Shown: piece after piece, positions 550 to 22,389 of the stretch
Layout of the letters: the number at the start of each line of letters is the position of its first letter
How positions within the stretch are numbered: position 1 is the first letter of the stretch
DNA from: Caecitellus pseudoparvulus
Taxonomy: Eukaryota; Protista; Bigyra: Bicosoecida
Direction: 5' to 3'
DNA length: 64,000 nt
Assembly: GCA_965644315.1 (NCBI GenBank)
Contig: CBFFRQ010000034.1
Span: 62,001 to 126,000 of the forward strand
Notes under the pieces: model-generated
What the model was told of the DNA's origin: nothing
Seen by the model: only the letters and a program-made list of their open reading frames with translations
Database searches by the model: none
Translations under genes and position numbers: made by a program

Positions 550-676
550 CGCTGGGGAAAGTGGGAAGGGGGGGTTGCCGACAAAGAGTGCTGCAGAGCG
601 GGCTTGGCGTGTACGCAATGCATTCGATGGCGCAAGCCGTTGAAACCTGGGGCCCAAGTATAAAGCGCAGCAAGTA

Positions 677-2854
677 CTACCTCGCACCACCTTGTTTCAC
701 TGCAATACGCAGACGCACAATGGCGCTGCGCAGTCCGGTCAGGGGCAGTCCGCAGTCCTCCCACGCCAAGCGACGTGCTTGGCGTTTCTGCTCCTCCGTC
801 ACAAACGCGACCACAGTGGGGTCTGCAGTCAGTGCCAGCCGCACAGACATGGCGCTGAGTCGTGCACCTGGTGTGGCTGAGTCGGGGTCAGCTGCGTGCT
901 GCTGGTGCAGGGCTGTGGCCAGCGCTGACCCAAGTGGCTGGTGGGCCGCTGGGGGCAGGACGGCCAGGCTGGACAGACACAGGCCCGTTGACACCGCACT
1001 TCCAGCCAGTGCAGCTGCACACGCGTGCAGGTGTGCAGTGTGATCCGTGGAACGGGTCGCGTCGCTTGGCTGTGGTAGGCCAGGGGCACGGCAGGCGACG
1101 GCGAGGCACAGCGCCATGACGAGCTGCGCTGAGACGGAGGCGGCAGCCCCCATGATGGGCTGTGCCTTGAACAAAACCGTTTCTTCGCGTGTTCCGTGTT
1201 CCAGCTGTGTGGTGGCCCAGGCGGCGTTGAGGTAGGGGCAGTCTGCGACCATGTTGGGCAGGGGCGGGATGTTGACTCCTGCGGCGGCGGTGAGGGCCGA
1301 TGCGAGGTCGGGCGAGTCACCCCGCCGTGTGGCCGCGACGAGGGATGCATCGGGAGGCGGCAGCGCCCACCCCCCCCGGGCACAAATGGCGTCCAGGCAC
1401 TGCTCTGCGGCAGCCAGGGTGCGGGGGCAGCCGTTAACGGCGGCAGCACCGCGGAACGCCTTAGCTACGTCTGGCAACGTGTCCAGGGTGCAGGGGAGCA
1501 GGGCTGTCAAGGAGGGCAGTGCGTCCACTTGGCCTGCAGTGAGGCAGGGCCCAATGGTGGTGTCAATCATGCTCTCCAGCAGCTCGTCGGGGGACATGAT
1601 GGTGGTGGGAGTGGCTAGGACGGCGTTGTGCAGGAGGGTGACGGCGAGGGGGGTGTGACCCCCCCTCACGGCGGCCAGGGCCAGGATGAGGCTGGGCTCC
1701 ACATCCCCACCCTCAACTTGCACTGCCGCGGGGTCCAGCGTGCCCGCCACGGCGGCGTGGATATTGCGGAGTGCGACGGGGTGGTCAGTGCTGGCGGAGG
1801 TGCCGAGGTCGCACAGGGTGGTCGCAAAGTCAGGGGGCGGCGGTGCGTACCACAGCCAGTGCGTGTACACTCCCTGTGAATACATCATGCCTGTGCGCAT
1901 GTCCACGGCACTGGGGCGTGCGACCAGCACGGCTCGCAGACGGTCGGCGCCGTCCGGCAGCTGCGACATGCGTGCGAGCATGAGCTCGTTCAAGTACAGG
2001 AAGACACGGGGCGTGTCTGCGAAGGCTGTGACGAGGGAAGGCAGCAGGTCGGGCAGGCTGTCCACGGTGCAGCCCATGTGCACGAGGGCGCGGAGGAAGG
2101 AGGTGCGTTCTGCGTCGTGGGCGTCGATTTCCGTCCAGTTTGAGAGGCCGCCGGTGGGCGTCATGGTCACGGTGCGCCCAGTGGCGTCGAGGAGGGTGAG
2201 CGCGCCGCCGGGTGCGGAGAGGTCGTCGGCCCACAGCAGGGGGGAGAACTGCATCATGCCGAGGATGATGCTGGGCGCCACGCGCGCACGGCAGAGGCGA
2301 GATAAGGCGGCGTGGTGTCCGGGCGGCACGTGTTGCAGTGCGACGTCCAACAGAGGCTGAAGGGGGGGTGGCAGGTCGCCTGCGCCACAGCTGGTGAGCA
2401 GGGTGTAAACGGTCGATACGCAGCGATCGAGGGTCTTGTTGCCGGGCTTGTCCTCCGCCTCGAGGTGTGTGCGCAGCAGGTCGCACGCTCGTCGCAGCGT
2501 GGCGTCCTCGCCCGTCTCTGCAGCTCCTAGTCGGATGAGGATGGGGAGGAAGCGGAGAGAGTGCGTGCTGAAATCGCGCTGGAGGGCGGTGATGGGCATC
2601 AGGGCAACCTTGCGCACGAAGGTTTCCAGCCCCTTCCATGTGCAAGGCGGTGTGGAGGGTTCGGCGATGAAGGGCTCCAGGTCAAGTTCCGCACCGCTCG
2701 CCGCTGCGCGGTCTACGGCTGGGCAGCAGCGTGCCAGGAAGGGCAAGGGCATGCGCTTGCGCACACCGGCTATGCGTGTGTTGACGAACACCAGGGGCGG
2801 CAGCAGGCTCGCAGGCGGGTGACACAGGGCCTGGGAGCGGGGTTTGGCTGCCAT
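677..2854 (-). CDS. Hypothetical protein, ~725 aa, predicted all-helical (solenoid-like)
   Basis: Longest ORF in the region (677..2914). The first ATG is at 2854 (MAAKPRSQ). The translation is Leu/Ala-rich and amphipathic. No family recognised. Confidence 0.7.
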   Translation of the reverse strand: MAAKPRSQALCHPPASLLPPLVFVNTRIAGVRKRMPLPFLARCCPAVDRAAASGAELDLEPFIAEPSTPPCTWKGLETFVRKVALMPITALQRDFSTHSLRFLPILIRLGAAETGEDATLRRACDLLRTHLEAEDKPGNKTLDRCVSTVYTLLTSCGAGDLPPPLQPLLDVALQHVPPGHHAALSRLCRARVAPSIILGMMQFSPLLWADDLSAPGGALTLLDATGRTVTMTPTGGLSNWTEIDAHDAERTSFLRALVHMGCTVDSLPDLLPSLVTAFADTPRVFLYLNELMLARMSQLPDGADRLRAVLVARPSAVDMRTGMMYSQGVYTHWLWYAPPPPDFATTLCDLGTSASTDHPVALRNIHAAVAGTLDPAAVQVEGGDVEPSLILALAAVRGGHTPLAVTLLHNAVLATPTTIMSPDELLESMIDTTIGPCLTAGQVDALPSLTALLPCTLDTLPDVAKAFRGAAAVNGCPRTLAAAEQCLDAICARGGWALPPPDASLVAATRRGDSPDLASALTAAAGVNIPPLPNMVADCPYLNAAWATTQLEHGTREETVLFKAQPIMGAAASVSAQLVMALCLAVACRAPGLPQPSDATRSTDHTAHLHACAAALAGSAVSTGLCLSSLAVLPPAAHQPLGSALATALHQQHAADPDSATPGARLSAMSVRLALTADPTVVAFVTEEQKRQARRLAWEDCGLPLTGLRSAIVRLRIAVKQGGAR

Positions 2855-3056
2855 GCTGCGGCGGCTTGGCGTGGTGAGGCGAGGGGCCAATGTGCGTGCT
2901 GCTGCAGGGTGCAAAACGTAAGAGTCCTGGGCGCGGTGAAGGGCGCGCTTGAATGAGCACCGATAACAGTACTACCAGGACTGCTGCCTTGGGTTTTGGT
3001 GCCGCCTTGCGTTTGGCGGCTTGGCACCAAGGCCGCTCTCGCACCCACTGAACGCG
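2855..3056. promoter_or_regulatory. Putative bidirectional promoter (202 bp)
   Basis: Lies between divergent start codons; inferred from position only. Confidence 0.45.
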
Positions 3057-6000
3057 ATGGCAGTGCAGATCAGCTGCCGAGTGGCGGGTGTGCCTGTGTT
3101 GCTGCCAGAGGGGTATGATGAAATCCTGGCATGGCATGCGAGTGACCGACGCCTTGTGGGTGCGCCGAGCCTTGGCGGGCGGGTGCCCAGTGCGCACGCG
3201 TTTCGTGTCGCTGGCGTTACGCGTGCCGGCGCACACGGCACGGCGTCCATTCAGGCCCACACCGCTGCCGAAAGCACAGCCCCAGTGTTGGCTCGTTGCG
3301 CTTCACACGGAAACGCAGCTTGGTTGGATGTGCAGGGCATCGTGCGGGTGCTGGTTGGTCAGACAGGCGCTCAAACGGCCGCGCCGTGCCCCGGCGATTT
3401 GCTGCTGCCTTGCCACCGCGTCACTCTGTCCCTGGCAGCGCAGGGGTCGGTGGTGGTGCTGACGTCTCAGGTCCAGCAAGCGACGTGGATTGGACGTGTC
3501 ACGCATGCGCACCACATTGCCTGGCACCGCGCCATTGCGCGCTCTGCTCTGTCCAAGGCTGCTGTGCATGGTGGCGAGGCTGCGTTTCATGCAGTGGCGT
3601 TTCAGGCTCGGGGGCCAGCTACAAAGGCCGCCACTGGCGTGCTGAACGTGAGCGCTCGGCCAGTGGAGGACGCTGTGCAGCTGCGCCACCCCTCTGGTGA
3701 TGACGAGGGGCGGCTTTGGAAGGTTGACCTGCACGCGTTTCGAGTGCAATTGCCGCAGGCCGGTGGTCACTCTGAGCCACCGGTGAACGCCGGCACCGCC
3801 AGCGAGGAGGAGGAGGAGGAGGTGGACGCCTGGCCGCCTCGTCTGCTGAGCGCGGAGACATTCTCTCTGCGTCTGCCACGTGGCGTGGGCGCTGAGCAGG
3901 TACGGGTGAAGGTGGGTGGAGGGGGCGACTGGGTGGCGGTGTGCGGAGGGGGGGCGGAGGGCCCCTCCTGCCTCGTAACGCACCACAGACCCACAGGCAT
4001 GACGTACACCCTGCCCCTGCACCATCTCAGCGCGACGGTCGTGTCAGGGCCTGAGGCGCACGTCCTGGAGGGGGGGTCCATGACACCCTGGAGGGGGGGT
4101 CCGGCGGGTGTCCACTCTGGACTCCCGTCGCCAACCACCACCATCCACGACTTTGCGTGGCTGGAACATGGCGCAGGGTTGGTGGTGTTGTCGGAACACG
4201 GCAGCCTGGGCGTGTTCCTGCCCAGTGGCCTGCCTCTGCCCCTGGCTGTGACTCTGAGCACGCGGGGTGGGTCAGCAGCCTCTGCCGCCTTCGCAGCTCA
4301 CCCACTGGGCAGGCATGGGTCAGGGGGGGGGAGCAGGAGTCAGCACGCGGGTGGCGAGGCCAGGGAATCGGCTCTGGACACGCCAGGCACTGACTCGTCC
4401 AGTGACTCGGAGGACCGCAGCATCGTGGAGGGTGGCAGGGCGAGCGGGTCAGCGAGCGCCCTGCGCCTGGCACTGGGGGTGTTCCCGGCCCCCCCTCCAG
4501 GGCAGGTCGACCCCCCCTCACGCCACACCATCGCCGTGCACACGAGTGCAGCGCGGTCGCCCGTGGCAGGGGGTGGGCCCACCCCCCCCGGCTCCCCGCA
4601 TTCCCTCGTCATCGCCAACGGCAGCATGGCGTTCGTGCTGAGCCTGAGTGGGCCTGAGTCAGACTGCGGGTCACCCGACGGGCGCACGGCAGTCATGCAG
4701 TGCCTGGTGACTCCCCACGCCCTCAGCGGGTTGGGTTCCACCCTCAGCCGCACTGCAGCGGAAGCACGTGCGACCCTGCTGCCGACCAGTCGACACCGCC
4801 CCTTCACCCGGTCGCACAGCGACGCTTGTGTCGCATCTGCCCTGGCACTGCTTCAAGTGCTGCCTCAGACACACGCGGAAGCGGCGACTTTGCGTGATGC
4901 GTTGGCGCCCCATGTGCGTGAGCTGCAGGCCCAGCTGCAAAGCACACCTCGTGCGGGGGACAGTGGAAGTGCCGGTCGCGTGGCCGCCGAGCTGGTCGCA
5001 GGGGTCGAGTGTCTGACACGTGGCCTGCACGCCTGGTGTCTCCTGTGTGCACAGCCCCCCCCCCCCCCCCCCTCATCTGACGATGACGTGGCGCCTGCCA
5101 GGGAACAGCTGGTGCGCGCTGCCGTGTGTCGGCTGGTCGCAGACGGGCTCGCTGCGACCACCAGCGCCGTGCTGGATCTGCGCGCCGTCGCCGACGCCGC
5201 TGCCGGGCGGCGTGATGTGCGCACCGCAGTGTTGGCGCTGCACAGCGCTGTGATGACGACGGCACTTGCTGCAGCAGGACAGGTGGCGCCGCAGCCCGTC
5301 GCACTGCGACCGGGTGTCGCACACGACGACCAGCTGAGCGTGGCACCCAGCACGACCCTGCAGCGCCGACTGGAGCTGCTGGGCGACGTGGTGCCCGATG
5401 GCGTCGACGACGGCGCGGTGCTGGCGCCAGCGGCGCAGGCAAATGCCCAGCAAGTGTTTGCGCTGGTGAAGGCTATTGTTGACACCTGGACGTGGCAGCT
5501 GACGTCGCGTGAGCACCCCAATGCGCTGGTCGCGCCGACGCTGGACGCCGGTGCAGCTCGCGACGCGACCAGCTCGGCCTCCTCGCCCCTCCTGCAGCAG
5601 CTGCCTCAGTACGTGGCAGAGGCGGTGTTGCAGTGCTTGGGTGCGGGGCATGCGTGGCTGGGGCGCTCGGGGGAGGAGGTGGCGGCGGCGCCTCTTGACT
5701 TGCACCCCCCCTTGACACCCCTTCACGTGGGCTGGGTGCTGACCATGCGGCGGCTCGCACAGGTCGCACAGGAGGTCGCACAGGCGGTCGCAGCTGGCGA
5801 CGACGAAGGCGTCGAGGACCAGGCGTACTGGGTGCACTACGCCGCGCACGTCGCACGTGACGACCTCCTCGCGCAAGAGGTCGCAGCCACCGACGCCATT
5901 CTGCAGGTCGAGCGAGTCGCACTGGCCCTGGGTGCCGAAACGCCCGTGCCCCCCGCTGCACACAGAGCCCTGTGCGCAGCACTGGACCGCGTGCGCGAGC

Positions 6001-9000
6001 TGCACTGCCTGGATCGGCGCCTGCGACCAGCTGCCGCGCCTCAACTGCATCCTGCCGCAGAAACAGCCGCTGCGGCTGCTGTGGCCGCGGCAGCTGCAGC
6101 GTACCAGGCTGCCCTGGCGAGGGGACTGGCAGCGGTGGCTGCTGGGGACTTGCTCGGCGCCTGCGACCAGCTGCACTTGGCAGGGCCTGCCGGGCTGCCC
6201 GCACTGATGGTGGTGCTGCTCCTGCGGCAGCGACCCGCAGAGGCGCTGTCGCTGGGGCGACGCGCCTGCCACAAAGTACAGGCGGCGGCAGAGGGTGAGG
6301 GGCGTGAGGTCAGTGGCTACGCTGCTGCTGCACTTGTGCTGGGCAGTGCCCTGGCGCAGTCCTTCTGGGGCGACGGGGAGGGGCTGCCGGTGGGCGTTTC
6401 TGCGACGGGGCGCCTGGTGTGGGGAGCGGAATTTGACAAGGCCCTGTCGGGCGAGGCACTAGTGCTGCCACACCCCGCCTGTGCTGGGGCATGCGCCACC
6501 GAGCCCGCCCCGGAGTCAGGGTGGGCGGAGGATGGGCCCACTGTGCGGCCGTCCCCCCGTCATGTCCCCCGAGCGCCGCTCCTGCTGGCTGCGGCGCACT
6601 TGCACGACTGGAGCCCCCACACGGCGGTGGAGCTGCTGGTCGCAGGCGGCGCGTGCGACCTGGCGGGTGCCCTCGCTGCGACCTGCCCCGCCCGCGTCGT
6701 GCAGGTGCAGGTGACGCAGCCCTCATCCATGCTGGCAGACACCGACCCACATTCTACCCCCACAGCTGTGCTGACAGTGGGCGTGCGCGTGCCGGACGGG
6801 GCGCTGCCGCCCATCCTGCCGCAGGATGGGCCCATGTCCCCACAGGGTGGGCCCAGTCTGGACCCCACGCCCCTCGTCACCTTCCACCACGAGGAGGACG
6901 GCCCACTGTTCTGGCTGCGACCAGGACAGGCTGCGTGGCTGGATACAGCCACAGTGCGTCACCTGCACACTGCCCACGATGCGATCGGCAACCACGCGCT
7001 GCTGCGGGCACACTGGGACGATCTGGACTCGGACGCGGTGCAGGTAGGCCTGCGGGCGGCGGCCCGCGTCGCCATGTCGCACTGCGACCGACGACACTTC
7101 AACGAGCTGCTGTACCTGGTCAGAAGCTTGCCGCTGCCGCCGCCTGCCGTGGCTGCGTGGCTGAGCTGTGTGGCACGCGATGCGGGCTCTGCCCTGGATG
7201 TGCTCGCCGCACAAGTCACGCTCGCCGACGCCGCTCGTGCGTTGTCGGGCCTGGGCGGCGAGGACAGTGACTCGCCGACCCTCGTCGCGCTGCTGGCGCG
7301 CGGTGTGCTGGCGCCACCTTTCACACACCGCCCCGCCAACCCCGCCATGCACACCACGGCGCAGTGGCTGCAAGCGGTGCAAGACGCCGCTGCGGCACTG
7401 CCCCTGCCCAGTGTTCCGAGCTGGGTCCCTGTTCCGCATGTGCGGCGTTCCGGGCAGCGCCACGCACCCCGCACACACCGACCCAGCGCTGACGCGCAAC
7501 CTGACGGTAGTGCCACGGACACGACGCACTTCGACGCGACGGGGCGCACGGCGTCGAGAGTCAGTGCCGGCCACGCAGGACTCGCCTTTCAGACTCAGCT
7601 GCAGTTCGGCGGCGCAGTCGCTGGCGATGCGTTGGTGCGATTCCCAGCGCCGCCCGATGGCGCTTGCGATGCGGGGGGCGAGGGAGAGGCGGTCGACGCC
7701 GCGATGCAGCACATCGCCTTGTGCGACCTGCCGCACGCGCGACCCCTCGTCGTCTTTCCCGGCCTGCAGGCTCTGTGCCGCACCGGTGTCGGCCATGCCC
7801 CAGCGCTGGCATACATCTGCCACGTGTCAGGCGCTGGGCGGACAGCCCACGCTACGCTCGCAGGGCTACTGTCAGTCGCAGACTCAGGGAACGCGCAGCA
7901 GGTCGCAGGGTCGACGGAAGGGCAGGAGGGAGAAGGGGCGGAGCTGGTCGCAGCCCCCTCCCCAACTCCGCGCTTGCTGCTGGCGGCTGTGTTGGTGCTT
8001 GATGCGATCCATGCGGCGCTGGAGTGCGAGGCGGGCGTCGGCGCCTGCGACCAGCTCACGTGGCGTGACCTGTTCACTGCAGCACTGCCGCCACCCGAAG
8101 CGCTCCTGGCTGGCAGTGCTGCCACCCACCCCGCACCCGCCCTGGCGCCGTTGGTGTCGCCGCTGCAGAGCGTGCTGCTGGCGACGTGGCGATGGGACAG
8201 CCTGCTGGCGCTGTCGAGCTGGGGTCGGCAGGTCGCACGCCGAGCGTCGCAGGCGGCAGCGGCGCCCCCTTCTCCGTCGATCCCACCTCCCCCCACACCA
8301 GTGCGCGCATTTGGCTCGCCTGGCTGGCACGGCAGCTTCGTGCAGCTGGCTGGCGAGTCGGCGCTGCAGCTGGTCGCTGACGCCGACGTGCGACCTCGGC
8401 TGGCGTCCCTCGTCCTGACGACGCCGCCCTCTGCTGGGTCTGCTCTGGTCGCGGGGGAGGCGGAGGCGGTGGCTGCCTCGCTGACTCCCCTGCGTATTAC
8501 GGCCGAGGCAGCTCTGGCCGGAGCTGTTACCGCCCTCGCCCTCACCGCGCCCCCCGTAGACACGCCCGGGGGCCCTTCCCGCAGCAGTGCCGCTGAAACG
8601 CAGCACATGGTGGCGGGGTTGCTGGCACTGGCGAGTGGCTCAGCCCCCGCCCTGGCCATGCAAGCGCTGGCCGTGGCGCCACAGCACACACTGCTGCAGG
8701 GTGCGGCGGCGGCAGTGGCGGGTGCGTGGCGCACGGTGCAGCGACGGGGGGGTTGGGGGGGGGGTGCCGCCGCTTCGACCCCCCCCCCTGATCCCGTCGA
8801 CCCCTCCAGTTGGGACGCCGTGCAGGGTGTACTGCAGCGGCAGCTGGTGGGGCGCGGCGTCGCACTGCGACGTGCTGTGTGGGCGCTGTGGCCCATGCTT
8901 CGGTCGGTGCGACCAGCGCGCGACCAGGGCGACGCCGCGGCAGCCCAGTGGCAAGCCGCACTGCATGGGGGGCTGGGCACGGCGGGGCGTTGGTTACGAC

Positions 9001-12115: not shown

Positions 12116-12403
12116 GGGGGCGCGCTCAGTGAGTGCGTTAAGGCTGGGCTGGTGAGGTTGGGGTGGGGGGTGTCGACGCAGCAGCTTGTGGCGCGGTGAA
12201 TTCATACGTTTCCGCAACTGTCACACGTCGCCAGGCCAGGGTGCAGGCAGACGGGGGGGGGGGCGTCGCACAGCCCCGAGCAATATGCCAGCAGAAACGC
12301 TCCTGCAAGGGGAAGCTTCGACGCTTTACGCCAAGCCAAGGCGCAAGGAGGGTGACGATGCTGGTTTGGCAAGGGGTGTGCGACAACGGGGAAGGGGGGG
12401 GTG

Positions 12404-13861
12404 TCAGGGGGGTGACGAGGGGGGGTCGGGCTCCATCGACTGGATGGGCACTGCGTCACGGGTGCTGTCTTGAGAGGAGTGCTGCTCGGAGGCCGGCGCG
12501 GTGGTGGCGGCGGGAGTGACTCGCGAGTCACCTGCTGGGAGAGCGGCGACGTCAGCAGCACGTTCGAGTTGCACTGCTTTACCTTGCTCATGGGGGGGGC
12601 TGGGGCTGGACTCCGCGAGGGGGGGGGCGGCATCCCCCCCCTCGTCACTGCTGCGCATCAGCCCGCCATCAGCTTGCACGCGCCACGTGGACAGGGAGCC
12701 CCCCTCGTCACTTTGTAACTCAGAGTGCTCGGCGATGGGCGAGCCAGGCTGAGTCAGGGGGGGGTGCAGTGACTCCTGCTGCGCCGCGAGACTGGCCAAG
12801 CCGCTGTCGTGCGGCACGCTGGGCTGTGTCAGCGTGTCAAGAGCTGTGCCCGGTGCAAGCCACTGCAGCGGTGCTGACACAGCCCAGCCCACAGTGCTGC
12901 CCACCCACACCCCCGTGCCCACCAACCACGCAGCTCGTCGCCACCACACCCACGCAACGCACAGCGTGAAGATCACCAGCCCTGCTCCAATTACCGCACG
13001 GTCCATGATGTTGGCACGCTGCATGGCGCAGGGACGGGGGGGGGCGGTGAAACGCACCACGAGCACTTGGCGCGTGCGTACTGCCCTGCCCCACGCACCC
13101 TCAGTCGCTGCACTCGATCACGAGCAGTGCTGGCGTGTAACGCATAGGACGTCTGCAACCCCAGTGTGGACTTGAGTGAGTCGGTGCCCTCAGCTGCAGG
13201 GGGGGTGAGGAGGGGGGAGGGTGCTACCCAGCTCGTTGGCGGACATGTGTGTGAAACGCACCAAGCACGCTGGCTGCGCCTTGCACGCGAGTCAACTCTG
13301 CCGCCAGCAGGCTGTGTGCTTGCTGCAGCGCAGAGGTGGACGCAGCAGGGGCAGCCGAGTCAAGCGAGTCAGTGGCGAGGGCGGGCAAGGGCCCAGATAC
13401 CGCCGTCTGCATCTGCGGACCTTGCAGTTGCCGCACGCGCTCCTGGGCCTGTGCACGGCAGGGGAGGGGGGGTGTGGGCTGTGCTGTGCATGCCACGTGA
13501 GAAGGCCAGCCCTAACTCGGCCAGTCCCCATGGCACGGTGACAGCAGCACCAACGCACAGCTCGGCAGATGGCAAGTCCATGCTTCACTTGCTGGGTTGT
13601 TTCTCCCTGGGTGCCCTGTGGCAGCGCGGCGTGGGCGCCAAGCGAGGTGCGGTGGGCCCCGCGAAACGCCGTCGAAACGCGCACCTCAAACTTGAGCATG
13701 CGCAGGGACGCCTCGTAGAACCGCAGGTGCAGGCCGATTTCCTTCACACGCATCACATCTGCCATCCTTCCTTCTTCCCCTGCCACCTCTCGGCCCAGTT
13801 GCTGCACTTTGTCGAGCAGCCCTTCAACCTGCAGCGCCTGGCCGGCTGGTGTGGTCGCCAT
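12404..13861 (-). CDS. SEC20: Sec20/BNIP1 ER SNARE, 376 aa, 5 exons
   Basis: Exons 13861-13685, 13615-13559, 13448-13262, 13193-13099 and 13018-12404, joined by GT-AG introns of 69, 110, 68 and 80 nt, give an intact frame. The product STSALQQAHSLLAAELTRVQGAASVLAEGTDSLKST...VQRLRRANIMDRAVIGAGLVIFTLCVAWVWWRR fits the Sec20 SNARE helix, D(R/K) and TM anchor pattern. Confidence 0.85.
12516..12531. repeat. Perfect 16-bp palindrome GTGACTCGCGAGTCAC
   Basis: Self reverse-complementary; built from two inverted GAGTCA words. Confidence 0.9.
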
Positions 13862-14239
13862 GCGTGTGGCCGGCGCGCTGGGTTAGTGGCCCGAACCAGG
13901 CGTGGAGGACGGGGGGCAGACGCACAGTGAGGTGCCTGCACCACTTGCGCCGTGTCCGCAGCAGGGCTGAAGCCAGTGGGCTGCGTGAGATATGGTGGTT
14001 GCAGGCCACTGTGCAGATGGCACTGCCCACTCAGTGGCGCCTCAACCCCAAACCAGAAAACACACAAGAATCAAGTCCACAGACATCCTAGCATGCACTG
14101 CTCCTCCTCAGCACCCGTGGGACGTGCCCATTGCGGCGCTGGCTCGACGCGTGCGCTGCGCGTGCGGCCAATTTCCGCAGCGCTGTAAGGGGTGGCAGAC
14201 ACGGCGCCCAGCGCCCCGCAGCCCACGCCCTGCGTCGCC
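13862..14239. promoter_or_regulatory. Putative bidirectional promoter, SEC20 / cNMP protein
   Basis: 378 bp between divergent ATGs, with an A-rich patch at 14044-14075. Confidence 0.45.
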
Positions 14240-17200
14240 ATGTCTGAGGCAAAGACGGAACCCGCGCCTAGAGAAGGCACAGAGCAAGGCGTGGCTGAGA
14301 CGGAGTCCGGAAAGGGCGTGTTTTTGACCGAGGTCGCGGGGGCCGAGGGGGCAGGTCGCAGCGACACGCATGGCGACCGATCCCCCCCCCGCGCGGGAAG
14401 CCCGGACAGCGTGCCACGGCCCAAAGTGCAGACGGAGGCACGGGCTAAGCCACGCTCTGTGGCGGGCAGTGCAAGGGGGGGTGGCACTGGCAACCCCCCC
14501 TCGCGCAAGGGCCGACCCCCCCTCACGCTCATCCAGCGCAAGGTACAGGACCCCCTCGCCCTGCGGAATATGGAGGAGGTGCAGCTGGTGACGGCCATGA
14601 AGACTGCCCGCCCAGTGGCGCTGCGCCAAGTGCTGCAGCGGCACCGTGAGGAGGCGGAGGGGGGTGAGGGGGGTGAAGGGGGGGGTGCCACACCCCCCCC
14701 CAACCCCCCCTCGCGCCCCGATTCCCAGGGCAGCTCTGTCTCCGCCCCGTGGCTACTGCTGCAGCGCCTGTTCCAAGACGCCACCTCCAAGAGTGAGGGC
14801 ATCAACGAAGCATCAGATTTCGCGCTCATGCGACGGTGTCGGGTCGCAGCGCTGCACGATCGCACGCTGGTGCCGCCCAGCGACCTGCTGAGCATCTTTG
14901 GCGACCTGCCGCCGCCAGCTGGGTCGAACGTCAGCGGGGCAGGGGGGGGTCGGCATGTGCGACGCCCATCGGCGACCCCCCTGCCCAGCGCTCGCACTGC
15001 GACCGAGGCGTGGTCGCACAGCGCCGCGGTGGCGCCCATGGTGAGGCAGTCGCGCAACGAGGCCGCTGTTCGTTCCCTCATGGGGCTGCAGATGCCGACG
15101 CCGTTCACGGAGGAGGAATCCTCCGCATTTGACTCATTTCTCCGCGATGGCGCGTCCCTGCGCAAGCATGCCGCCGCTGCCAGTGTCGTGAGTGTGAATT
15201 GGGCGCGACGAGGACTGAGCAGCCCAGGGGGGGCGGGGGGCAGACGCAGCGGGTCACCGGGGCCTCGCGGTGCGTTGGTGCCGTCCACGCCGCAGGATGG
15301 CGCGGGTCGTGGACCCACTGACTCGCGCCGTGACTCCACCACTGCGACCGCCGAGGAGTCCCCCACCCTGGCTGGCTTTGCCTTTGGAGCCAGTGCAGAG
15401 GACCTGAGCAAGGAGGGTGGGGCACTCGGAACACCCGTGTTCCGAGCTGCCCTCCCACCCGATGACCTGCCCTCCCGCGTCCCCTCTGTCCTCAGCAGCG
15501 GCAGCGGCAGCGGTGGCGCCGGCAACTCCAGTCTCCTGGAAGCCCTGCAGTGGGGGGAGGGGGGTGAGGTGTCCGATGATACGGAGGAGGAGGAGGAGGT
15601 GGGGGCGGGGGCCAAACCCGCGACCCCAGATCGTGCATTCGCCCCCCGCGGCCCCGCGTCCCCAGGCGCTGCGGAGTTGCGGCGGGAAGCGGCCGCGAAA
15701 GCTGCGACGACGACGCCGGACTCGACGCCGACCCTGCCGGCGGTCGCAGGTGGTCGCACCGCGTCGGTCGCGTCGCGCCCTTCCCGTCTTGCCCGCGTTG
15801 TGCAAGGGCGCCTCTCTGCCGCCACGTCCGCCGCCCTCAAGTCGGGCCTGCTGGCGACGGCGAAAGCTGCGTCGCGTCGCCACCAGCGAGCTCGCATGCG
15901 ACGTGCTCGGTCGGGGGAGCAGGCCAGCATGCTGGCGTCGGCGCTGTCGCAGTCTGTCGGTTTCTTCAAGGGACTGAAGGACCCCACGGTGGCCATCACG
16001 CTGTGCAAGTACATGCGCACGGCAGTGGTGGCACCCGGGTCGCTGGTCGCGAAACGCGGCGACCTCGGCGACCACATAGCCGTCATCCTGTCCGGTTCCG
16101 TCGTCGTGCACATTGAAGATGGGCGTGGGTTCGTCGATTTCGTGCCTCTGCCGCGGGGGGCCGCGTACGGCTCCTTCGCCCTGCTCACCAACAAACCCCG
16201 CATGGCCAGCTGCTACAGCGGCAAAGAAACGCCCACGGTGCTGGGCGTCATCCCCCGCACAGTGTACCTGGCAGTGCTGCGGAGGAGCCAAGAAGCGGAC
16301 ATGGTGCACAAGATGAACGCCATGCTCGGCTGCGACATGCTGCGGGCCGTGCCGCCAGCCGTGTTGCAGAAGGCTTCGTACTACTTCCGCCCCGCCACGC
16401 TGACGCACGGGGAAGTGTTGCTGCCAGCACACACCGTGCCCCGCACGCTGTTCCTGCTGCTGTCGGGGGAGGTCACGGTGTTCATGGATGCAGACCCAGC
16501 CGGAACACAGAACGCCCTGCGCCGCACCCAGGTCGCGGCGTACGCGGAACAGTCTGCCGCCCACATCGGCCGCCAACGCCGTGGTGCGTTGCTGGCCAGT
16601 GTGCGGGAGCTGCAAGCCGCGATCGTGGGCGCCTTCGCCGCACATGCGCGGGAGGGGGGCAGCGAGAACACGAGGGAGGGCCTGTTCCGCCGTCTCGCGG
16701 TCGCCGCTGCGGGGGGCGCTGCCCCGCCAACTCGAGACGCTGACCTGCTGTCGGCCATCGGCGGGTCACTGCAGGTGTCCCATGATGCGTTGGGGGGTGA
16801 CCCGGCGTTGCACGCGGCGTCAGGGGCAGGTCCCCTGCCTCGGTCCGGCGCCGCGGCGGAGTCGGCAGGTCGCATCCGGTCGCTGCCGGTCGCACGCTTC
16901 CAGAGCGGCGAGTACATCGGCGAGCTGGGCTTCGCGGGCGTGCCATCACCCGGAACACTCGTCGTGACCAGCCGTTCCGCCCTCCTCCTGTCCATCCCCA
17001 TCGACGTGTTCGCGAAACGCTTCGGCCCTGAGGCGGTCGCGTCGGGCGTGCAGGTCGCACAGCGACGCCTGGATCTGTGGGTGTCCCGTGTCGAGGCTGC
17101 CCATGCTCGCTCCTCCGCTGCCTCCAACCTGCTGCGAGAGGTGGGGTCCATGGCGGGGGCGGGGGTGCACCTGGGTGGGCAGGCGGGGGAGGTCGCACGC

Positions 17201-20200
17201 CTGGTCGCAGCTCACGCGGAGCTGGTGCGGGGCCCCACTGCGTCGCCATTTTCCGCGCCACCCTCAGAGCAGAAGCAGCACCAGCAGGGGGGTGGGCACC
17301 CCCCTTCCGCAGGCGCAAGCGAGGGTAGTCGGAACACGGAACACGCCAAGGTGTTCCAGAAGGCCGGTCGAGGCATCGGCGCACCGCTGCTGGCGCTGGA
17401 GGCGGAACTGGACTCCGTCGTCGCGCGTCGCAACGCACACCCGGCAGGTCGCGCCAGTCGACGTCCGCGCCGCGCCAAGCCCCGCGCTGCACACCTCATC
17501 GCGTCGGCCACGGACCCGGCATTCGCGAACATCGGCGTCGGAACACTGCAGGACATTCAGCGCGCACAGCGCCGGGCTGCGAGCGCCCTGCAAGGGGGCG
17601 GAGGTCGGCACGCGCGACCAGCTTCCCTGTCCCGTGCCGGCCGACGCCAGCGCGGCGCGACCGAGCCAGGTACCCGAGTCCCCCCCCGAACCCCCGCGGC
17701 TGGCAGTGACTCCACCGCACCCCAGCCTGGCGCGTCGTTTCTGGGAGTCATCCTGCAGTCGGAGTCAGTGACGGCGCCCGCCAACCCCCCCACGCGCCAG
17801 GTGACTGCTGCAGCGGTGCAGGGCAAGCCTGCCCTGCTGGGGTTGCAGCGCCTGCGAGCGCGCCAGCTCAGTGATGCGTTACACCGGGAGGCCATCGCCG
17901 CAGCGCACACACAGGCGGCGGCAGCGGCTGTGGCGTCCCTCGGGCCTGAAGCCCCCTCAGGGGAGAGCGTGAGGGGGGGTGCGAGCGGCACACACCCCTC
18001 CTTTGAGCGAACATTGAACGGCGCGCTGCTGCACCCAGAACACTCACGACGAGGGCAGGGGGGCTCCCACACACCGCCCTTCGCTGGCGGCGACGGCAGC
18101 GACTCCGACCCTGATGCGCCGCTGATTCTTCCCGGAACACCGTCAGGTGCACTGCCCCCCGCCAAGCTCGTCGCGGCAGTGGCGCCACGGGGTGTTCGGC
18201 GTCCGACCCTGTCCCGTGCGGCAGGTGTTCTGCCTGGCGGCGCCAGTGGCGGCGGCGCAGCGGCCGTTCCCTATGCGGTGATCGAAGAAACGCTCACGCA
18301 GCTGGCGGAAGGTCGCTTTGGCAGCACAGACGGCAGCCTCTCCATCCAGCTCAAGCGGGTGCATGCGGCACGGCTGGCAGGCAAGCTGGGGGGGGGCTCA
18401 GGAGGGGTGTCGAGGGGGGGGTCCACATCCCCCCCCCGCCGCATCACGTACGGCGATGCCGGGGCGAGCAGTGCCCCTGGGTCGCCGCTGCGGGCAGGCG
18501 TGACTCCCCACATCAGCAGCGCATCAAGTCTTCCCCCGGCTGGCACCCCCCCTCACGCAGGCCAGGGAAGGGGGGTGGTGGTGTCCAACCCCGCTGTCTG
18601 GGACGCTGTCATTGGGGGTCGCCTGCGGGCGGAGGCCGTGCGACCTCTGGATGACGGCGGGTCGCACGGGCCGACCCCTGGCAGGGCAGCGCAGGGCGGG
18701 CCCCTGCATCGGCGCAGTGCGCTGGCTGGCACGTCGCACGCGACGACTCCTGGACCACAGCCCAGCGCCAGCGCTTCCTGCGGCAGCCTTCCAAATTCCG
18801 CACCCGGCCCCCGCCCCGCCCAGACACATGAACCGCCTGCCGGGGGCCCCACCGCCCAGGGCACCCGTGTAACGCACGACGTGTACGGCATCGACATCGA
18901 CCTGGGCGCCATCCGTGCGACCACCAGCGACCAGCAGCTGGTCGCAAGCCTGCAGCAGTACCTATCGTACGCATCCCGCTGGGGCCTGCTGCCGCCCCAG
19001 CACCAGCGCCGCTTAGTGCGCATCATCCACAAACAAGACGCCGACATTCGCCACGAACTGCGACGACTGCGGGCAGGGGGGGTGTCCCTACCCCCCCTGC
19101 CGACAGGTGACGAGGCGGCACTGGCCGCCAGCGAGGCTGTCGTGCGGAATTTGATACCGCCCCGCCCCGCCAGCTCCGGCGGCGGCGGTGGGCCCACCAG
19201 TCCCGAAGCACGTCGCAGTGGGCGAGCGTCGTCGCGGGGAGGGGGCGGCTCACGCCAGGGGTCGCGGCCCGGCAGTGGTGGGGAGGAGGGGGGGGTGGTG
19301 TCGCCCCCCCTCCCCGCCGCCCCACCCTCCCCACACCCCCGCACCCCCAGCGCCTTTGGGGAGGACCTGTACGAGGCGGAGCGAGGAGGGGCACTCGGAA
19401 CAGGCGGTGTTCCGGGTGGATCTGCCGCCGCAGGTGTCGCCGCCGCGACGCAGTCCGCCACCCAACGCAGCAAACCCATGCCTGGGGAGAGTGTGCTGCG
19501 GCACGGACCACGCCAGCCGACCAGCGGAAACACCGGGTCCAGGCGTGTTCTCAGTGTCTCGGCCAGCGGCACGCTGTCCCGGCAAGGGGATGCCCCAGCC
19601 ACGCAGACGCGGGTGGGGGGGGAGGGTGCGGAAATTGATGCCCCCCTCGCCACCCGACTGCAGGCCGGCGCAGACACGGCGGTGGCTGTGACGAGTCCAG
19701 AGGTTGAGGAAGGGGGGGGGCGGGGGGGCAGCGTCTCTCGTGCGTTTCACGAGGGGCACGCATCCCCCCTGGCTGCTGTGGCTGTGCTGGAGGGGGGGGG
19801 CGAGGAGGGGGCAGGGGCGCACACCCACCGCCCCCGCCCTCACACGAGCAGTAGTGGTGGGGGCGCCCTGCGTATTACGTCACCCCTGCGCACGACGGCT
19901 TCCCGTGGGGGGCCTCGCGCTGCGACCAGCTCAGGCCCCACCGAGGCGCAGCGCGTCGACGCCCTGAGCGGCACACGCGGGGCCTTCGCAGCACAGGTGG
20001 CTGCGCGTGAGGCGGAACACGCCCAGGCAGAACACGAGTCACTCGCCCCCCACGGCGTGCACCCCTCTGACATGTGGCTCGTCAGCGCCGTCGCTGGAGC
20101 GCATGCCGCGGAGCGAGGAGTCACCGGAGCGGAAGGGGGGGGCAGTGACTCGCCACCCACCCCCCCAGCCACACCCCAGCCCCGCCGCCGCCGCCACGCC

Positions 20201-20869
20201 AGCCCACACACAGGATCCACGCACGTCGCCACAGTGCATGTGGGGCCACCTGGGGGTGATGGGGTGGCTGGTGACTCGGAACACGACCAGGAACACGCGC
20301 TGGCCGTGCTCATGGGCAGTCGAGGGAGCAGTGCGTGGAGCGAGGCGCTGCTGGAAGCCCCCCCCGCGGCGGCGGCGGCCCCCCCCACGACACTCAAGGT
20401 CGTGCACAGCCGGCGGGGGGGTCGACCCACGACGCCGCATCGCGCCGCCACGGCCGGGGCGCCGCACCACCCCACCACGCCCGATCTCAGGTCGCGCACG
20501 GGGCAGGGTCCTCGACGCAGTCCCCGCCGCCCCACATCTGGCCTGCGCGGGTGGCTGCCCACGCCCCAGGATGTGCTGGGGGCGGCGCACTCGGTGGGGT
20601 CGCTGGCGAGCACGATGCCAGGTCGCACGCGCCGACCGCCCTCTGCGACCTCCTTCGTCGGCGACCTCGACGCGGGGGACGGCATGCTGCTGGGCGCTGC
20701 CATCGCCCAGGGGGGGCGCCTGCCCTCTGACGAGGACGGGACGGGTGGGGGAGGTTGGAACACGGAACACAGAACAGGAACCGTGGAAGCTGCCATGGCC
20801 CCAGCGGCCGTCACCTACCGTGGGCGACGGGCGCACTCCCAGCGCCGCCGACGTGCCCGCAACACGTGA
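14240..20869 (+). CDS. Cyclic-nucleotide-binding domain protein (two CNB domains, CNBD1/2-like) in long disordered flanks, 2209 aa
   Basis: Single ORF with first ATG at 14240. CNB-1 (~15960-16280): KRGDLGDHIAVILSGSV...GAAYGSFALLTNKPRMAS. CNB-2 (~16330-17030): GEVLL...LFLLLSGEVTV...FQSGEYIGELGF. Confidence 0.8.
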   Translation: MSEAKTEPAPREGTEQGVAETESGKGVFLTEVAGAEGAGRSDTHGDRSPPRAGSPDSVPRPKVQTEARAKPRSVAGSARGGGTGNPPSRKGRPPLTLIQRKVQDPLALRNMEEVQLVTAMKTARPVALRQVLQRHREEAEGGEGGEGGGATPPPNPPSRPDSQGSSVSAPWLLLQRLFQDATSKSEGINEASDFALMRRCRVAALHDRTLVPPSDLLSIFGDLPPPAGSNVSGAGGGRHVRRPSATPLPSARTATEAWSHSAAVAPMVRQSRNEAAVRSLMGLQMPTPFTEEESSAFDSFLRDGASLRKHAAAASVVSVNWARRGLSSPGGAGGRRSGSPGPRGALVPSTPQDGAGRGPTDSRRDSTTATAEESPTLAGFAFGASAEDLSKEGGALGTPVFRAALPPDDLPSRVPSVLSSGSGSGGAGNSSLLEALQWGEGGEVSDDTEEEEEVGAGAKPATPDRAFAPRGPASPGAAELRREAAAKAATTTPDSTPTLPAVAGGRTASVASRPSRLARVVQGRLSAATSAALKSGLLATAKAASRRHQRARMRRARSGEQASMLASALSQSVGFFKGLKDPTVAITLCKYMRTAVVAPGSLVAKRGDLGDHIAVILSGSVVVHIEDGRGFVDFVPLPRGAAYGSFALLTNKPRMASCYSGKETPTVLGVIPRTVYLAVLRRSQEADMVHKMNAMLGCDMLRAVPPAVLQKASYYFRPATLTHGEVLLPAHTVPRTLFLLLSGEVTVFMDADPAGTQNALRRTQVAAYAEQSAAHIGRQRRGALLASVRELQAAIVGAFAAHAREGGSENTREGLFRRLAVAAAGGAAPPTRDADLLSAIGGSLQVSHDALGGDPALHAASGAGPLPRSGAAAESAGRIRSLPVARFQSGEYIGELGFAGVPSPGTLVVTSRSALLLSIPIDVFAKRFGPEAVASGVQVAQRRLDLWVSRVEAAHARSSAASNLLREVGSMAGAGVHLGGQAGEVARLVAAHAELVRGPTASPFSAPPSEQKQHQQGGGHPPSAGASEGSRNTEHAKVFQKAGRGIGAPLLALEAELDSVVARRNAHPAGRASRRPRRAKPRAAHLIASATDPAFANIGVGTLQDIQRAQRRAASALQGGGGRHARPASLSRAGRRQRGATEPGTRVPPRTPAAGSDSTAPQPGASFLGVILQSESVTAPANPPTRQVTAAAVQGKPALLGLQRLRARQLSDALHREAIAAAHTQAAAAAVASLGPEAPSGESVRGGASGTHPSFERTLNGALLHPEHSRRGQGGSHTPPFAGGDGSDSDPDAPLILPGTPSGALPPAKLVAAVAPRGVRRPTLSRAAGVLPGGASGGGAAAVPYAVIEETLTQLAEGRFGSTDGSLSIQLKRVHAARLAGKLGGGSGGVSRGGSTSPPRRITYGDAGASSAPGSPLRAGVTPHISSASSLPPAGTPPHAGQGRGVVVSNPAVWDAVIGGRLRAEAVRPLDDGGSHGPTPGRAAQGGPLHRRSALAGTSHATTPGPQPSASASCGSLPNSAPGPRPAQTHEPPAGGPTAQGTRVTHDVYGIDIDLGAIRATTSDQQLVASLQQYLSYASRWGLLPPQHQRRLVRIIHKQDADIRHELRRLRAGGVSLPPLPTGDEAALAASEAVVRNLIPPRPASSGGGGGPTSPEARRSGRASSRGGGGSRQGSRPGSGGEEGGVVSPPLPAAPPSPHPRTPSAFGEDLYEAERGGALGTGGVPGGSAAAGVAAATQSATQRSKPMPGESVLRHGPRQPTSGNTGSRRVLSVSASGTLSRQGDAPATQTRVGGEGAEIDAPLATRLQAGADTAVAVTSPEVEEGGGRGGSVSRAFHEGHASPLAAVAVLEGGGEEGAGAHTHRPRPHTSSSGGGALRITSPLRTTASRGGPRAATSSGPTEAQRVDALSGTRGAFAAQVAAREAEHAQAEHESLAPHGVHPSDMWLVSAVAGAHAAERGVTGAEGGGSDSPPTPPATPQPRRRRHASPHTGSTHVATVHVGPPGGDGVAGDSEHDQEHALAVLMGSRGSSAWSEALLEAPPAAAAAPPTTLKVVHSRRGGRPTTPHRAATAGAPHHPTTPDLRSRTGQGPRRSPRRPTSGLRGWLPTPQDVLGAAHSVGSLASTMPGRTRRPPSATSFVGDLDAGDGMLLGAAIAQGGRLPSDEDGTGGGGWNTEHRTGTVEAAMAPAAVTYRGRRAHSQRRRRARNT
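15425..15446. repeat. Inverted repeat CTCGGAACAC-CC-GTGTTCCGAG
   Basis: Perfect 10-bp arms with a 2-nt spacer. A related copy lies at 19392-19418. Confidence 0.85.
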
Positions 20870-20990
20870 GTGACTCCAGCTGCAACGCAGCAAGGTCGAG
20901 CACAGCGCAGGCAACACAATGCACTGCATTTTCCAGAGCGGAATCCAATCACCTTGTAGCAGGTGTGGCCCTGTGGCTTCAGACATGCCA

Positions 20991-22389
20991 TCACTTGGCA
21001 CCGCCGCCGCCGCTGCTGCTGCTGCTGCTGCTTGACACGTCAACAGTCGAAGCGGCTTCATGCAGGGCGCGTGCGACGCTGCGCATGCGGTCGACATACT
21101 CGAGGTCGCGCGTGTGTTCTTCCGGAACACCCGACAGGCCGTGCAGTGCCCCCCACCACGCCCCCGCGATGGCGCCGGTGCTGTCGTTGTCCCCGCCATG
21201 CAGCATGGCTGTCGTGACGAGGCGGGCGTAGGAGTCACCGCTGGCGAGTAACGCATCATACGCGATGAGCGTCGCACCCCGCCCCGTGCCGCCTGGCCAC
21301 TTGCAGGGCGTAATGGCGGCATAGTGAGCGTCTCGGGCGGCAGCGGCGGTCTCGGTCAGGTCCCACCAGGTCGCGTCGCGAGCAGGCGGCGCCGGCGGCG
21401 GGTCGCATCCGCCGAGGGTCAGTGGCAGGCCCATCGCCTCCGCATACGCCGTCCAGCCATCCACTTCGCGCTGCAGGTGGTCAAGCTGGTGCACTTGGCG
21501 CCCTGTGGAGACGATGTGAGCGGTGCAGGCGGGGACGAGGTCGACGAGTAGGTGTGCGACCCAGGTGGTCGGCGGCAGGTCGCGCAGGGCGAGGGCGGTG
21601 AAGTACGCCGCCACCGCCCCTCCAAACCACCCCAGCGGGTTGTGGTGCGTCATGCGCGATGAGTCAACGGCGTAGGCCACCAGCCACGGCAGGTGGCCGG
21701 GTGCGGAGAATAGAAGCCCCACCCCCATCGCACGCATCGCTGCGCCACAGCCACCACCCCCTTTTTCCGTGTACCGCAGGGCATCCCACCCGCCCCCGTC
21801 CTCAGCGATGCGGGACATGCTGTGCATGGTGCCGTGGCCCGGCGCGCGCCCCTGCATGTCCCGCATGCCGACCTTGTACGCCGCGGCGATGCCCTGCAGC
21901 ACGCGCCGAGGACGTTTGAATGCGCTGCTGCCTGCCGCTGCTAGAGGTTCTAGCGTGGCCAGGTGCAGCACGGTGTCGTCAGAGACAATCCAGTCGGGGC
22001 TGGTCAGTGCCAGGGCCAGGGGCCCCACGCCCTCTGCGGCAGGGGGGGGAGGGGGCGTGATGCACAGAACCAGCTCCCACCCGCGACATTTCTCCGGCAC
22101 AGCGCTGGCTGGGTGCGCGTCCCGCCACGTAACCACGCACTGGTCAGGGACATGCAGCTGCGGACGATTTCAGCACCCTCCATGCAAAACTCCCAGTGCC
22201 CTCGGCGGTATCCAAGGGCGTCCCCTGTGATGGGGGCGTGGTGAGTGCGGAAATTGCAAGCGCACACTACCACGCCAAAGCGCCACGCCACGCACCCACT
22301 CCTGACAGCACGATGCAGGCCTCGAAGCGCTCAGAGAGGGGAGTGGATGCATCATCCATGCCTTCGCGCGTGTCAGCAACGGCTGCCAT
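20991..22389 (-). CDS. ADPRH: ADP-ribosylglycohydrolase, ARH1-like (arginine), 406 aa, 3 exons
   Basis: Exons 22389-22296, 22224-22141 and 22033-20991 (introns 71 and 107 nt, GTGCGT...CAG) give VGDALGYRRGHWEF, WIVSDDTVLHLAT, GGGCGAAMRAMGVGL, RMTHHNPLG and HGGDNDSTGAIAGAWWGALHG, which are the ARH1 signature motifs. Confidence 0.93.
21001..21032 (+). repeat. Compound microsatellite (CCG)4(CTG)6-7 encoding the poly-Ser/Gly tail of the ARH1-like protein
   Basis: ccgccgccgccgctgctgctgctgctgctgct read directly. Confidence 0.9.

Follow-up and report, generated by a model that had tools for sequence, protein, structure and literature searches.

In the marine single-celled flagellate Caecitellus pseudoparvulus, a protist, we find that a block of five adjacent genes is packed with short DNA words that pair up at fixed spacings, resist change between strains and look like docking sites for several DNA-binding proteins, although binding and function are inferred from sequence alone. 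The window analysed is a 64,000-nucleotide stretch of one contig (CBFFRQ010000034.1, assembly GCA_965644315.1, forward-strand positions 62,001 to 126,000; positions below are those of the window). In the coding DNA at 600-22,300, GGTCGCA, GAGTCA, CGGAACA, GAAACGC and AGGGGGG are 4-12x above protein-preserving, codon-pair-aware nulls, on both strands and in several frames.

The original prediction, based on by-eye counts, was that five words and long G/C runs recur through coding sequence and introns at roughly 5-15x a simple base-composition expectation, often as tandem or inverted pairs, most densely over ~1-22 kb, moderately over 33-41.5 kb and near background in two giant genes. This observation is confirmed. 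In 1-22,300, counting both strands, we found 93 GTCGCA, 42 GAGTCA, 25 GGAACAC, 27 GAAACGC and 8 AATT(T)CCGC, 6-12x the mononucleotide expectation (higher for the rare 9-mer); the ratio was about 1x in 22.3-33 kb and 41.5-64 kb and intermediate in 33-41.5 kb. To test whether the proteins or their codons explain the words, as had been set beforehand as a condition for rejection, we used progressively stricter nulls. Enrichment survived synonymous shuffling gene by gene (3-6x), codon shuffling (172 observed vs 28) and codon-pair-aware models trained on word-poor genes: GGTCGCA 61 vs 8.9, GAGTCA 41 vs 9.8, CGGAACA 25 vs 2.0, GAAACGC 25 vs 2.5 and AGGGGGG 62 vs 12.2. The synonymous-shuffle expectation of 40 exceeds the codon-shuffle expectation of 28, as for words that pull amino-acid usage. 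Sense/antisense counts in the hot coding DNA were 53/38, 16/25, 17/8 and 12/13, the words occurred in several frames, and same-word pairs within 40 bp numbered 58 vs 25 expected.

Three points of the original prediction needed correction. First, the claim that introns also carry the words is only weakly supported: in non-coding DNA of the contig, GTCGCA and GAGTCA are at or below chance, and only AATT(T)CCGC, GAAACGC and G-runs are enriched. Second, GTCGCA is not enriched in 33-41.5 kb, where only the other words are. Third, the G/C runs are not random runs, because a G-run followed by a C-run within 15 bp occurs 11 times and the reverse order 2 times.

The word-rich domain (600..22300, GC about 0.70) starts with g1 (677..2854, minus strand), an orphan helical protein gene of 725 aa with 14 words vs 4.4 expected. 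Next, g2 (3057..12115, plus strand) is a large, fast-evolving gene in two frames (change near 10130-10268) with a propeller-plus-helical look, no homolog found, and 91 words vs 21 expected. g3 (12404..13862, minus strand) is a three-exon gene of unknown function with GAGTCA- and GAAACGC-rich exons, and g4 (14240..20869, plus strand) encodes a 2209-aa, mostly low-complexity protein with a cNMP-binding domain and carries 60 words vs 12.7 expected. Finally, g5 (20991..22184, minus strand) encodes an ADP-ribosylhydrolase (ARH1-like), a conserved enzyme that still carries 7 words vs 1.4 expected. Homolog searches for g2 and g4, a metagenome scan with g4 and exact look-ups were all blank; the spliced genes g3 and g5 were searched by single ORFs or exons only. 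Beyond the domain lies a word-poor island (23183..33154, plus strand) of cadherin-LRR and ephrin-receptor-like secreted genes, in which words are at 1x and not detectably conserved and 4-fold divergence is higher. A moderately word-rich zone follows (33400..41500; GAGTCA, GGAACAC and GAAACGC at 3-7x), and then the word-poor part (41715..63917, minus strand) of a giant ORF of about 12,400 aa that continues beyond the window.

The words behave like binding sites of dimeric proteins. Genome-wide, we found one preferred arrangement per pair. GTCGCA-N-TGCGAC had a 1-bp spacer in 24 of the first 50 sites (p 5e-7), TGACTC-N-GAGTCA a 1-bp spacer in 16 of 60 (p 8e-9) and tandem GGAACAC a spacer of 0 in 21 of 87 (p 1e-11). 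GAAACGC direct pairs numbered 371 vs 14 for the control, with the 4-bp spacer of GAAACGC-N4-GAAACGC in 41 of the first 100, and G-run/C-run pairs preferred AGGGGGGT-N4-ACCCCCCT, with a 4-bp spacer in 11 of 14 pairs against 0 for the control. In the window, the GTCGCA-S-TGCGAC inverted dimer lies at 5298..5310, 7076-7088 and 8859-8871 (read in frames 0, 2 and 0), and a TGACTC-NN-GAGTCA inverted dimer lies at 12517..12530, one base wider than the genome-wide mode. GGAACAC tandem direct dimers lie inside CDS at 17331..17344 and 20757-20770 on the plus strand and at 1189-1202 on the minus strand in another frame. The GAAACGC-N4-GAAACGC direct dimer (11-bp period) is found at 13663..13680 (plus strand) and at 36284-36301 (non-coding), and the AGGGGGGT-N4-ACCCCCCT palindrome at 17286..17305; 13 oriented G-run/C-run pairs within 20 bp occur in the domain. 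Generic hairpin perfection or slippage is rejected as the source of the dimers, since generic inverted repeats in the contig show no spacer-1 peak and 7-bp tandems inside CDS cannot come from slippage without a frameshift. A de novo dyad search in the 76 kb of word-rich DNA was swamped by local tandem repeats.

To test whether the words are maintained, we compared strains, matching bases for degeneracy class and base and counting both directions. Word bases varied about three times less than matched bases (12 variable vs 34.6 expected, O/E 0.35, P about 1e-5), whereas random hexamer sets averaged 0.91. Conservation held at synonymous and non-coding word positions (8 vs 24.4) and in the 33400..41500 zone (2 vs 11.3 expected). 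In a smaller subset for g2, limited to 35 listed differences, 2 word-breaking differences were seen against 2.5 expected.

One word is also a promoter element. A(A/T)TTCCGCA lies upstream of DnaJ and TPPII genes in relatives with about 55% protein identity. In the window, the promoter-type word AATTTCCGCA is found at 14170..14179 (plus strand), 70 bp upstream of the g4 ATG, and at 22246..22255 (minus strand), about 60 bp upstream of the g5 ATG, where it is kept in two other strains. GCGTTTC as a splice-donor by-product is rejected, as only 1-2 of 25 non-coding or exon-edge copies fit GTGCGT donors.

The domain is not unique. At least six similar word-rich zones lie on other contigs (C19:439-450k, C27:29-35k, C43:218-223k, C44:203-211k, C77:125-133k and C94:233-238k, given as contig and position), which we studied only through pattern counts and coordinates. 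On other contigs GAGTCA pairs co-locate with GGTCGCA pairs (14 of 58 within 10 kb vs 5.6). Within the domain, GTCGCA pairs peak at 140-165 bp (26 vs 16, p 0.0015) with a weak second harmonic; outside this window the counts were 31 vs 22 pairs and the spacing was not confirmed. No dinucleotide periodicity was seen.

The original prediction offered two interpretations, motif-directed mutation or repair analogous to cyanobacterial HIP1, or gene-body binding sites or chromatin marks defining a gene class, and it is partly supported. Dimer spacing, conservation between strains and the intergenic use of one word support gene-body binding sites, whereas the HIP1-like option is not supported. A gene class is only partly right because the signal is regional as well as per gene: it grades along one giant ORF and over about 90 kb, and a surface-protein gene left of the window is 2x enriched.

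What are the words, and what keeps them in place? We think it somewhat more likely than not that they are half-sites for about six sequence-specific, mostly dimeric DNA-binding proteins of transcription-factor or general-regulatory-factor type. In this view, A(A/T)TTCCGCA and GAAACGC are ordinary promoter or intergenic elements of this genome, and in discrete 5-25 kb domains their sites and those of the other factors would have spread through fast-evolving coding sequence by point substitution wherever the protein tolerates it, pulling amino-acid choice with them. Weak DNA-level selection would keep them: an enrichment of 3-6x means a scaled coefficient of about 1-2, easily visible in a large population, and weak-selection theory predicts an O/E of 0.43-0.55 for this enrichment. 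The likeliest benefit is chromatin organisation of the domain, such as holding it open or positioning nucleosomes, although this does not explain why these domains and not others were chosen. The analysis itself establishes the protein-independent enrichment on both strands, the word-specific dimer geometry, the reduced strain variation, the promoter location of one word and the co-location of different words on other contigs; protein binding, the identity of the binders, any effect on expression, selection rather than drive and the chromatin role are inferences. Candidate reader families exist in the genome (6 Zn2Cys6 and 1-3 bZIP matches), none of them matched to any word, and no RNA run holding this DNA was found.

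Alternatively, and less probably, the words could spread by binding-biased gene conversion, in which the bound allele is favoured as donor, or spared from breaks, during recombination. A set of transcription-factor words would then invade coding sequence in recombination-rich domains regardless of benefit, alongside GC-biased conversion, and rewrite the proteins there. Such a eukaryotic motif drive would be the mirror image of PRDM9 hotspot erosion and an analogue of uptake-sequence drive. Consistent with this, word enrichment along the contig tracks GC at codon positions 1-2 (rho 0.51), 4-fold GC (0.31) and CpG retention (0.34). Hot proteins are rich in Gly/Ala/Arg/Pro, lack detectable homologs and have high dN/dS in parts (0.84 at the g4 end), and several words differ between strains through non-synonymous changes. 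Drive gives the same reduced variation as selection, so population data cannot separate the two, nor exclude local mutation protection. However, drive presupposes sex and elevated recombination in these domains, which remain assumptions here, known TF- or PRDM9-directed hotspots lose their motifs (PMC11703093), and three of the words are not enriched in non-coding DNA, where drive would meet least resistance (a small sample in the hot zone).

It is also possible, but unlikely, that bound proteins or linker position lower the mutation rate inside the words 3-5x, so that they accumulate neutrally. The O/E of 0.35 is compatible with 1/enrichment (0.2-0.33), and variation also rises with distance from words (not normalised per gene). 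Contrarily, bound factors usually raise local mutation rates, and protection would have to cover all substitution types and differ by domain.

A chromosome-level site (replication origin zone, pericentromere or pairing site), whose machinery the words would load rather than serving the genes, appears still less likely. There is about one strong zone per contig on seven contigs, and the gradient over about 90 kb crosses gene borders. However, the words occur on both strands throughout with no polarity switch along the contig, unlike Chi/KOPS-type polar motifs, and many large contigs show no strong zone. A word-free island sits inside the gradient, and no low-GC island was seen beside the domain, in DNA that excluded 2 kb just left of the window. 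One domain per centromere is not supported for the same lack of an adjacent low-GC island and of zones on many contigs.

Methyltransferase-directed repair, as proposed for HIP1 (PMC4390886), is very doubtful. The words are sharp and frame-independent, most contain or prefer a CpG, and a putative NPPY amino-methyltransferase has been noted elsewhere in the genome. Yet exon-wise profile searches of the genome for C5, N6/N4 and type I DNA methyltransferases (PF00145, TIGR00675, PF01555 and PF02384) gave no match while controls were detected, which does not exclude a very divergent enzyme, and an MT-A70 search was blank but lacked a responding control. Six unrelated non-palindromic words would need six enzymes, and single-site repair predicts neither fixed dimer spacing nor restriction to domains. 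We also considered a CpG methylation island: CpG is better retained in the domain (C fraction 0.67 vs 0.49) and C/T differences per CpG are fewer (0.026 vs 0.085), but the effect is modest and no C5 methyltransferase was found. Finally, an artefact of low-complexity Ala/Gly/Pro/Ser proteins plus codon-pair bias is largely refuted: although different words avoid each other locally, as expected if protein context decides which word fits, and Asp-Ser-Glu-Ser can be encoded by the TGACTC/GAGTCA dimer, enrichment survives every null above, even with the codon-pair model trained on the hot genes themselves, occurs on both strands and comes with conserved synonymous and non-coding word positions.

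These results provide putative half-sites and dimer geometries for about six inferred DNA-binding proteins in a lineage for which our literature searches found no host promoter code, and they show a second code strong enough to shape protein sequence over a whole gene cluster. Compact, intron-poor genes, a large population and available strains make this a clean system in which to ask whether exonic binding sites are kept by selection or by recombination drive, and either answer bears on why some gene clusters evolve so fast that homologs become undetectable.

The closest known systems are exonic transcription-factor sites or exonic enhancers ('duons'; PMC13216554), in which factor-type sites also lie inside protein-coding exons and are constrained at synonymous and non-synonymous positions. 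As in those, the words here are constrained beyond protein needs, and A(A/T)TTCCGCA and GAAACGC, but not GTCGCA or GAGTCA, match elements enriched in non-coding DNA. Here, however, the putative sites fill a contiguous 22-kb, five-gene domain at about 9 sites per kb, are visible from sequence alone, shift amino-acid content and show fixed dimer geometry in a bicosoecid-like protist, and any enhancer activity would be by analogy. Bacterial DNA uptake sequences (PMC2817400) are likewise short words on both strands inside ORFs that raise the peptides they encode, favour poorly conserved genes and are absent from some apparently mobile or young genes; the present case involves about six words rather than one, restriction to domains, dimer spacings, a promoter element among the words and a eukaryote with no known uptake bias. 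HIP1 shares frame-independent over-representation in coding DNA, but it is a single palindrome, genome-wide, with cognate methyltransferases, whereas these words are asymmetric half-sites at about 1x over most of the contig and no cognate enzyme was found. The DNMT5 linker-CG periodicity reported for Micromonas, Emiliania and Aureococcus is a gene-body signal with which the 140-165 bp GTCGCA peak, possibly tied to nucleosome spacing but not confirmed outside this window, may be compared; it concerns CG rather than 6-8-mers, and here no C5 methyltransferase was found and no dinucleotide periodicity was seen. Yeast general regulatory factors, TF-directed recombination hotspots, and C. elegans pairing-centre motifs and PATCs involve several factors with additive short sites that organise chromatin, as proposed for the words here, or clustered sites with fixed spacing; those are mostly intergenic or intronic, whereas here the sites run through coding exons and the same words are shared across chromosomes.

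The assembly comprises 30.6 Mb in 215 contigs and carries a 1697-nt 18S gene, and DNA near-identical to the window occurs in marine metagenomes. To place the window (positions 62001-126000 of contig 34) in context, we examined the rest of contig 34 except for 2 kb just left of the window, and built a six-frame coding map. The interval at 780-22300, where the original prediction placed its short words, holds five tightly packed genes: an orphan (g1), a 9-kb gene without detectable homologs (g2), a three-exon gene (g3), a gene for a 2209-aa protein with a cNMP domain (g4) and an ADP-ribosylhydrolase gene (g5). Two irregularities were seen in g2. The gene changes frame in a C-rich tract at 10130-10268, where contigs of another sample show 1-3 base deletions, but these also occur at many other homopolymers, so that an assembly error is not settled; and three other strains carry a 39-base insertion or joint at 8451-8726. 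Left of the window lie the ciliary genes CFAP58 and ODAD1 (L005:4472-7042 and L008:4269-6395, segments of contig 34), of which ODAD1 is 4.3x word-enriched. The left end of the contig (segment L004:1-5400) is a tandem array with a 1241-bp unit, each copy holding one AATTTCCGC, and the right end carries TTAGGG telomere repeats. A 771-bp non-coding stretch with a GC of 0.32 near the telomere (segment L020, contig position about 227.3-228.1 kb) is the only strong low-GC patch seen on this contig. Over the whole of contig 34, CCGG, CTAG, GGCC, CGCG and GATC are depleted, GTAC is doubled and TpA is strongly avoided (o/e about 0.3).

Are the words enriched beyond what the encoded proteins require? 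Raw ratios to expectation are 6-12x in 1-22,300 and about 1x in the giant genes. When each protein was held fixed and synonymous codons were shuffled, the four main words were found to be 3-6x enriched in every hot gene, including the conserved hydrolase (7 vs 1.4), and only 1.0-1.1x in the two secreted genes at 23-33 kb. We then modelled codon choice on neighbouring bases, training the model on word-poor genes, and obtained observed versus expected counts of 61 vs 8.9 for GGTCGCA, 41 vs 9.8 for GAGTCA, 25 vs 2.0 for CGGAACA, 25 vs 2.5 for GAAACGC and 62 vs 12.2 for AGGGGGG; no simulation reached the observed value, even when the model was trained on the hot genes themselves. An unbiased scan of all 6-8-mers returned the same words at the top. 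One-mismatch neighbours are near expectation except at degenerate edges, which gives SGTCGCA, SGAGTCAC, CGGAACAC and GWAACGC. Both strands and several frames are used, and GAGTCA and GAAACGC are also enriched left of the window, outside the DNA in which the words were first picked out (44 vs 18.8 and 25 vs 4.9). The observation behind the original prediction is real. Its claim that the words also run through introns is weak, because non-coding DNA shows no excess of GTCGCA or GAGTCA.

Genome-wide pattern searches gave each word one favoured partner arrangement. GTCGCA-N-TGCGAC has a spacer of 1 in 24 of the first 50 sites, TGACTC-N-GAGTCA has a spacer of 1 in 16 of 60, and GGAACAC forms an immediate tandem in 21 of 87. 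GAAACGC forms 371 direct pairs within 14 bp against 14 for the control, with a spacer of 4 (an 11-bp period, one helical turn) in 41 of the first 100 and side peaks at 5 and 6, while the one inverted arrangement tested numbers 19; in the window, GAAACGC-N4-GAAACGC lies at 13663-13680 and 36284-36301. This abundant spaced element is probably the site of a major promoter factor. The G/C runs resolve into AGGGGGGT-N4-ACCCCCCT, with a spacer of 4 in 11 of 14 and none in the control, and in the window a G-run precedes a C-run 11 to 2. In contrast, generic inverted repeats in the contig show no spacer-1 peak, and the copies in the window are read in different frames. Fixed spacing and orientation are what cooperative or dimeric DNA-binding proteins select, and binding is here inferred from geometry alone.

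By their location, two of the words are ordinary regulatory elements. AATTTCCGC lies mostly in non-coding segments of the contig, and 60-70 bp upstream of g4 and g5. The same word, A(A/T)TTCCGCA, lies upstream of DnaJ and TPPII genes in two distant relatives whose hydrolase is about 55% identical (L023:1865 and 12409; L024:6426 and 17854, the relatives' sequences), so the element is old. The relatives' neighbourhood, however, is not syntenic and shows no coding excess of the other words. GAAACGC is enriched in non-coding DNA (21 vs 5) and is not a splice-donor artefact.

To test whether the words are constrained, we used two metagenome contigs from other strains that cover 19.3-41.3 kb of the window at about 95% identity. 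After matching for degeneracy class and base, 3 word bases vary where 20.5 are expected, whereas random hexamer sets average an O/E of 0.91. Taking each strain as reference in turn gives 12 vs 34.6 (O/E 0.35, P about 1e-5), including 8 vs 24.4 at synonymous and non-coding positions. In the word-poor island the count is 3 vs 5.2, which is not significant, and a short list of strain differences in g2 shows 2 word-breaking changes against 2.5 expected, which is uninformative on its own. Words are gained and lost between strains, so this is a running equilibrium. In one strain, the ephrin-receptor-like gene (L026/L029, strain sequences orthologous to window 26390-33154) is called as many short fragments while the other strain has a 1944-aa ORF, possibly a broken allele.

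The pattern recurs elsewhere in the genome, where contigs other than 34 were examined by pattern searches. Clusters of three or more GTCGCA-class pairs occur on contigs 19, 27, 34, 43, 44, 77 and 94, one per contig, and GAGTCA pairs fall near them more often than chance (14 of 58 within 10 kb vs 5.6). The zone in the window has the most listed pairs (15; contig 19 has 12). On contig 34, enrichment grades over about 90 kb and along a single giant ORF; this minus-strand ORF (window 41715-63917 and segments L010-L011) continues to about contig position 140.9 kb, roughly 12,400 codons without a stop, and its 5' half has 1.5-2.3x word enrichment. Enrichment correlates with GC at codon positions 1-2, with 4-fold GC and with CpG retention. 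Four-fold divergence is 0.06-0.08 in g4 and g5, 0.10-0.14 in the secreted genes and 0.03-0.09 in the moderate zone. There is no strand polarity. GTCGCA pairs with unrelated flanks peak at 140-165 bp (26 vs 16, p 0.0015), which would fit a nucleosome repeat, but outside this window the excess is only 31 vs 22.

What maintains the words? The original prediction proposed either motif-directed mutation or repair, analogous to the methyltransferase-driven model for HIP1, or gene-body binding sites or chromatin marks defining a gene class, and this interpretation is supported only in part. Searches of the genome found no C5, N6/N4 or type I methyltransferase, and a search for MT-A70, run without a positive control, was also blank. 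There is no PF00145 or TIGR00675 match at all, so even DNMT2 may be absent or very divergent. Zn2Cys6 and bZIP genes are present. CGGAA-containing words resemble fungal Zn2Cys6 half-sites and TGACTC resembles a bZIP site, a resemblance that is only a lead. We favour, as somewhat more likely than not, the view that the words are binding sites of several dimeric factors, accumulated in tolerant coding DNA and held by weak selection on chromatin state. In this view, an enrichment of 3-6x implies a scaled advantage of about 1-2, which predicts an O/E of 0.43-0.55, close to the 0.35 seen. The analysis itself shows the protein-independent enrichment on both strands, the dimer geometry, the reduced variation between strains, the upstream position of one word and the co-location of different words on other contigs; that proteins bind the words, which proteins these are, that selection acts and that it acts on chromatin are all inferred.

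Alternatively, binding-biased gene conversion could drive the words into coding sequence. This reading is possible but less likely, although it predicts much the same as weak selection, cannot be excluded here and is well fitted by the GC and fast-protein correlates. Mutational protection also predicts much the same and cannot be excluded, but is more doubtful still. Taken together, the readings that involve bound proteins are very probable. The chromosome-site, methyltransferase and codon-artefact readings are less likely.

How does this arrangement compare with known systems? In the literature searched, which was incomplete, we found no description of such a multi-word, domain-restricted coding overlay in a protist, although coding-sequence words and exonic factor sites are themselves known. 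The words are asymmetric and at about 1x over most of the contig, and no cognate DNA methyltransferase was found, unlike cyanobacterial HIP1 (PMC4390886). They resemble bacterial uptake sequences in how they sit in ORFs and favour poorly conserved genes (PMC2817400), and in our interpretation, from sequence alone, the system works like exonic factor sites (PMC13216554).
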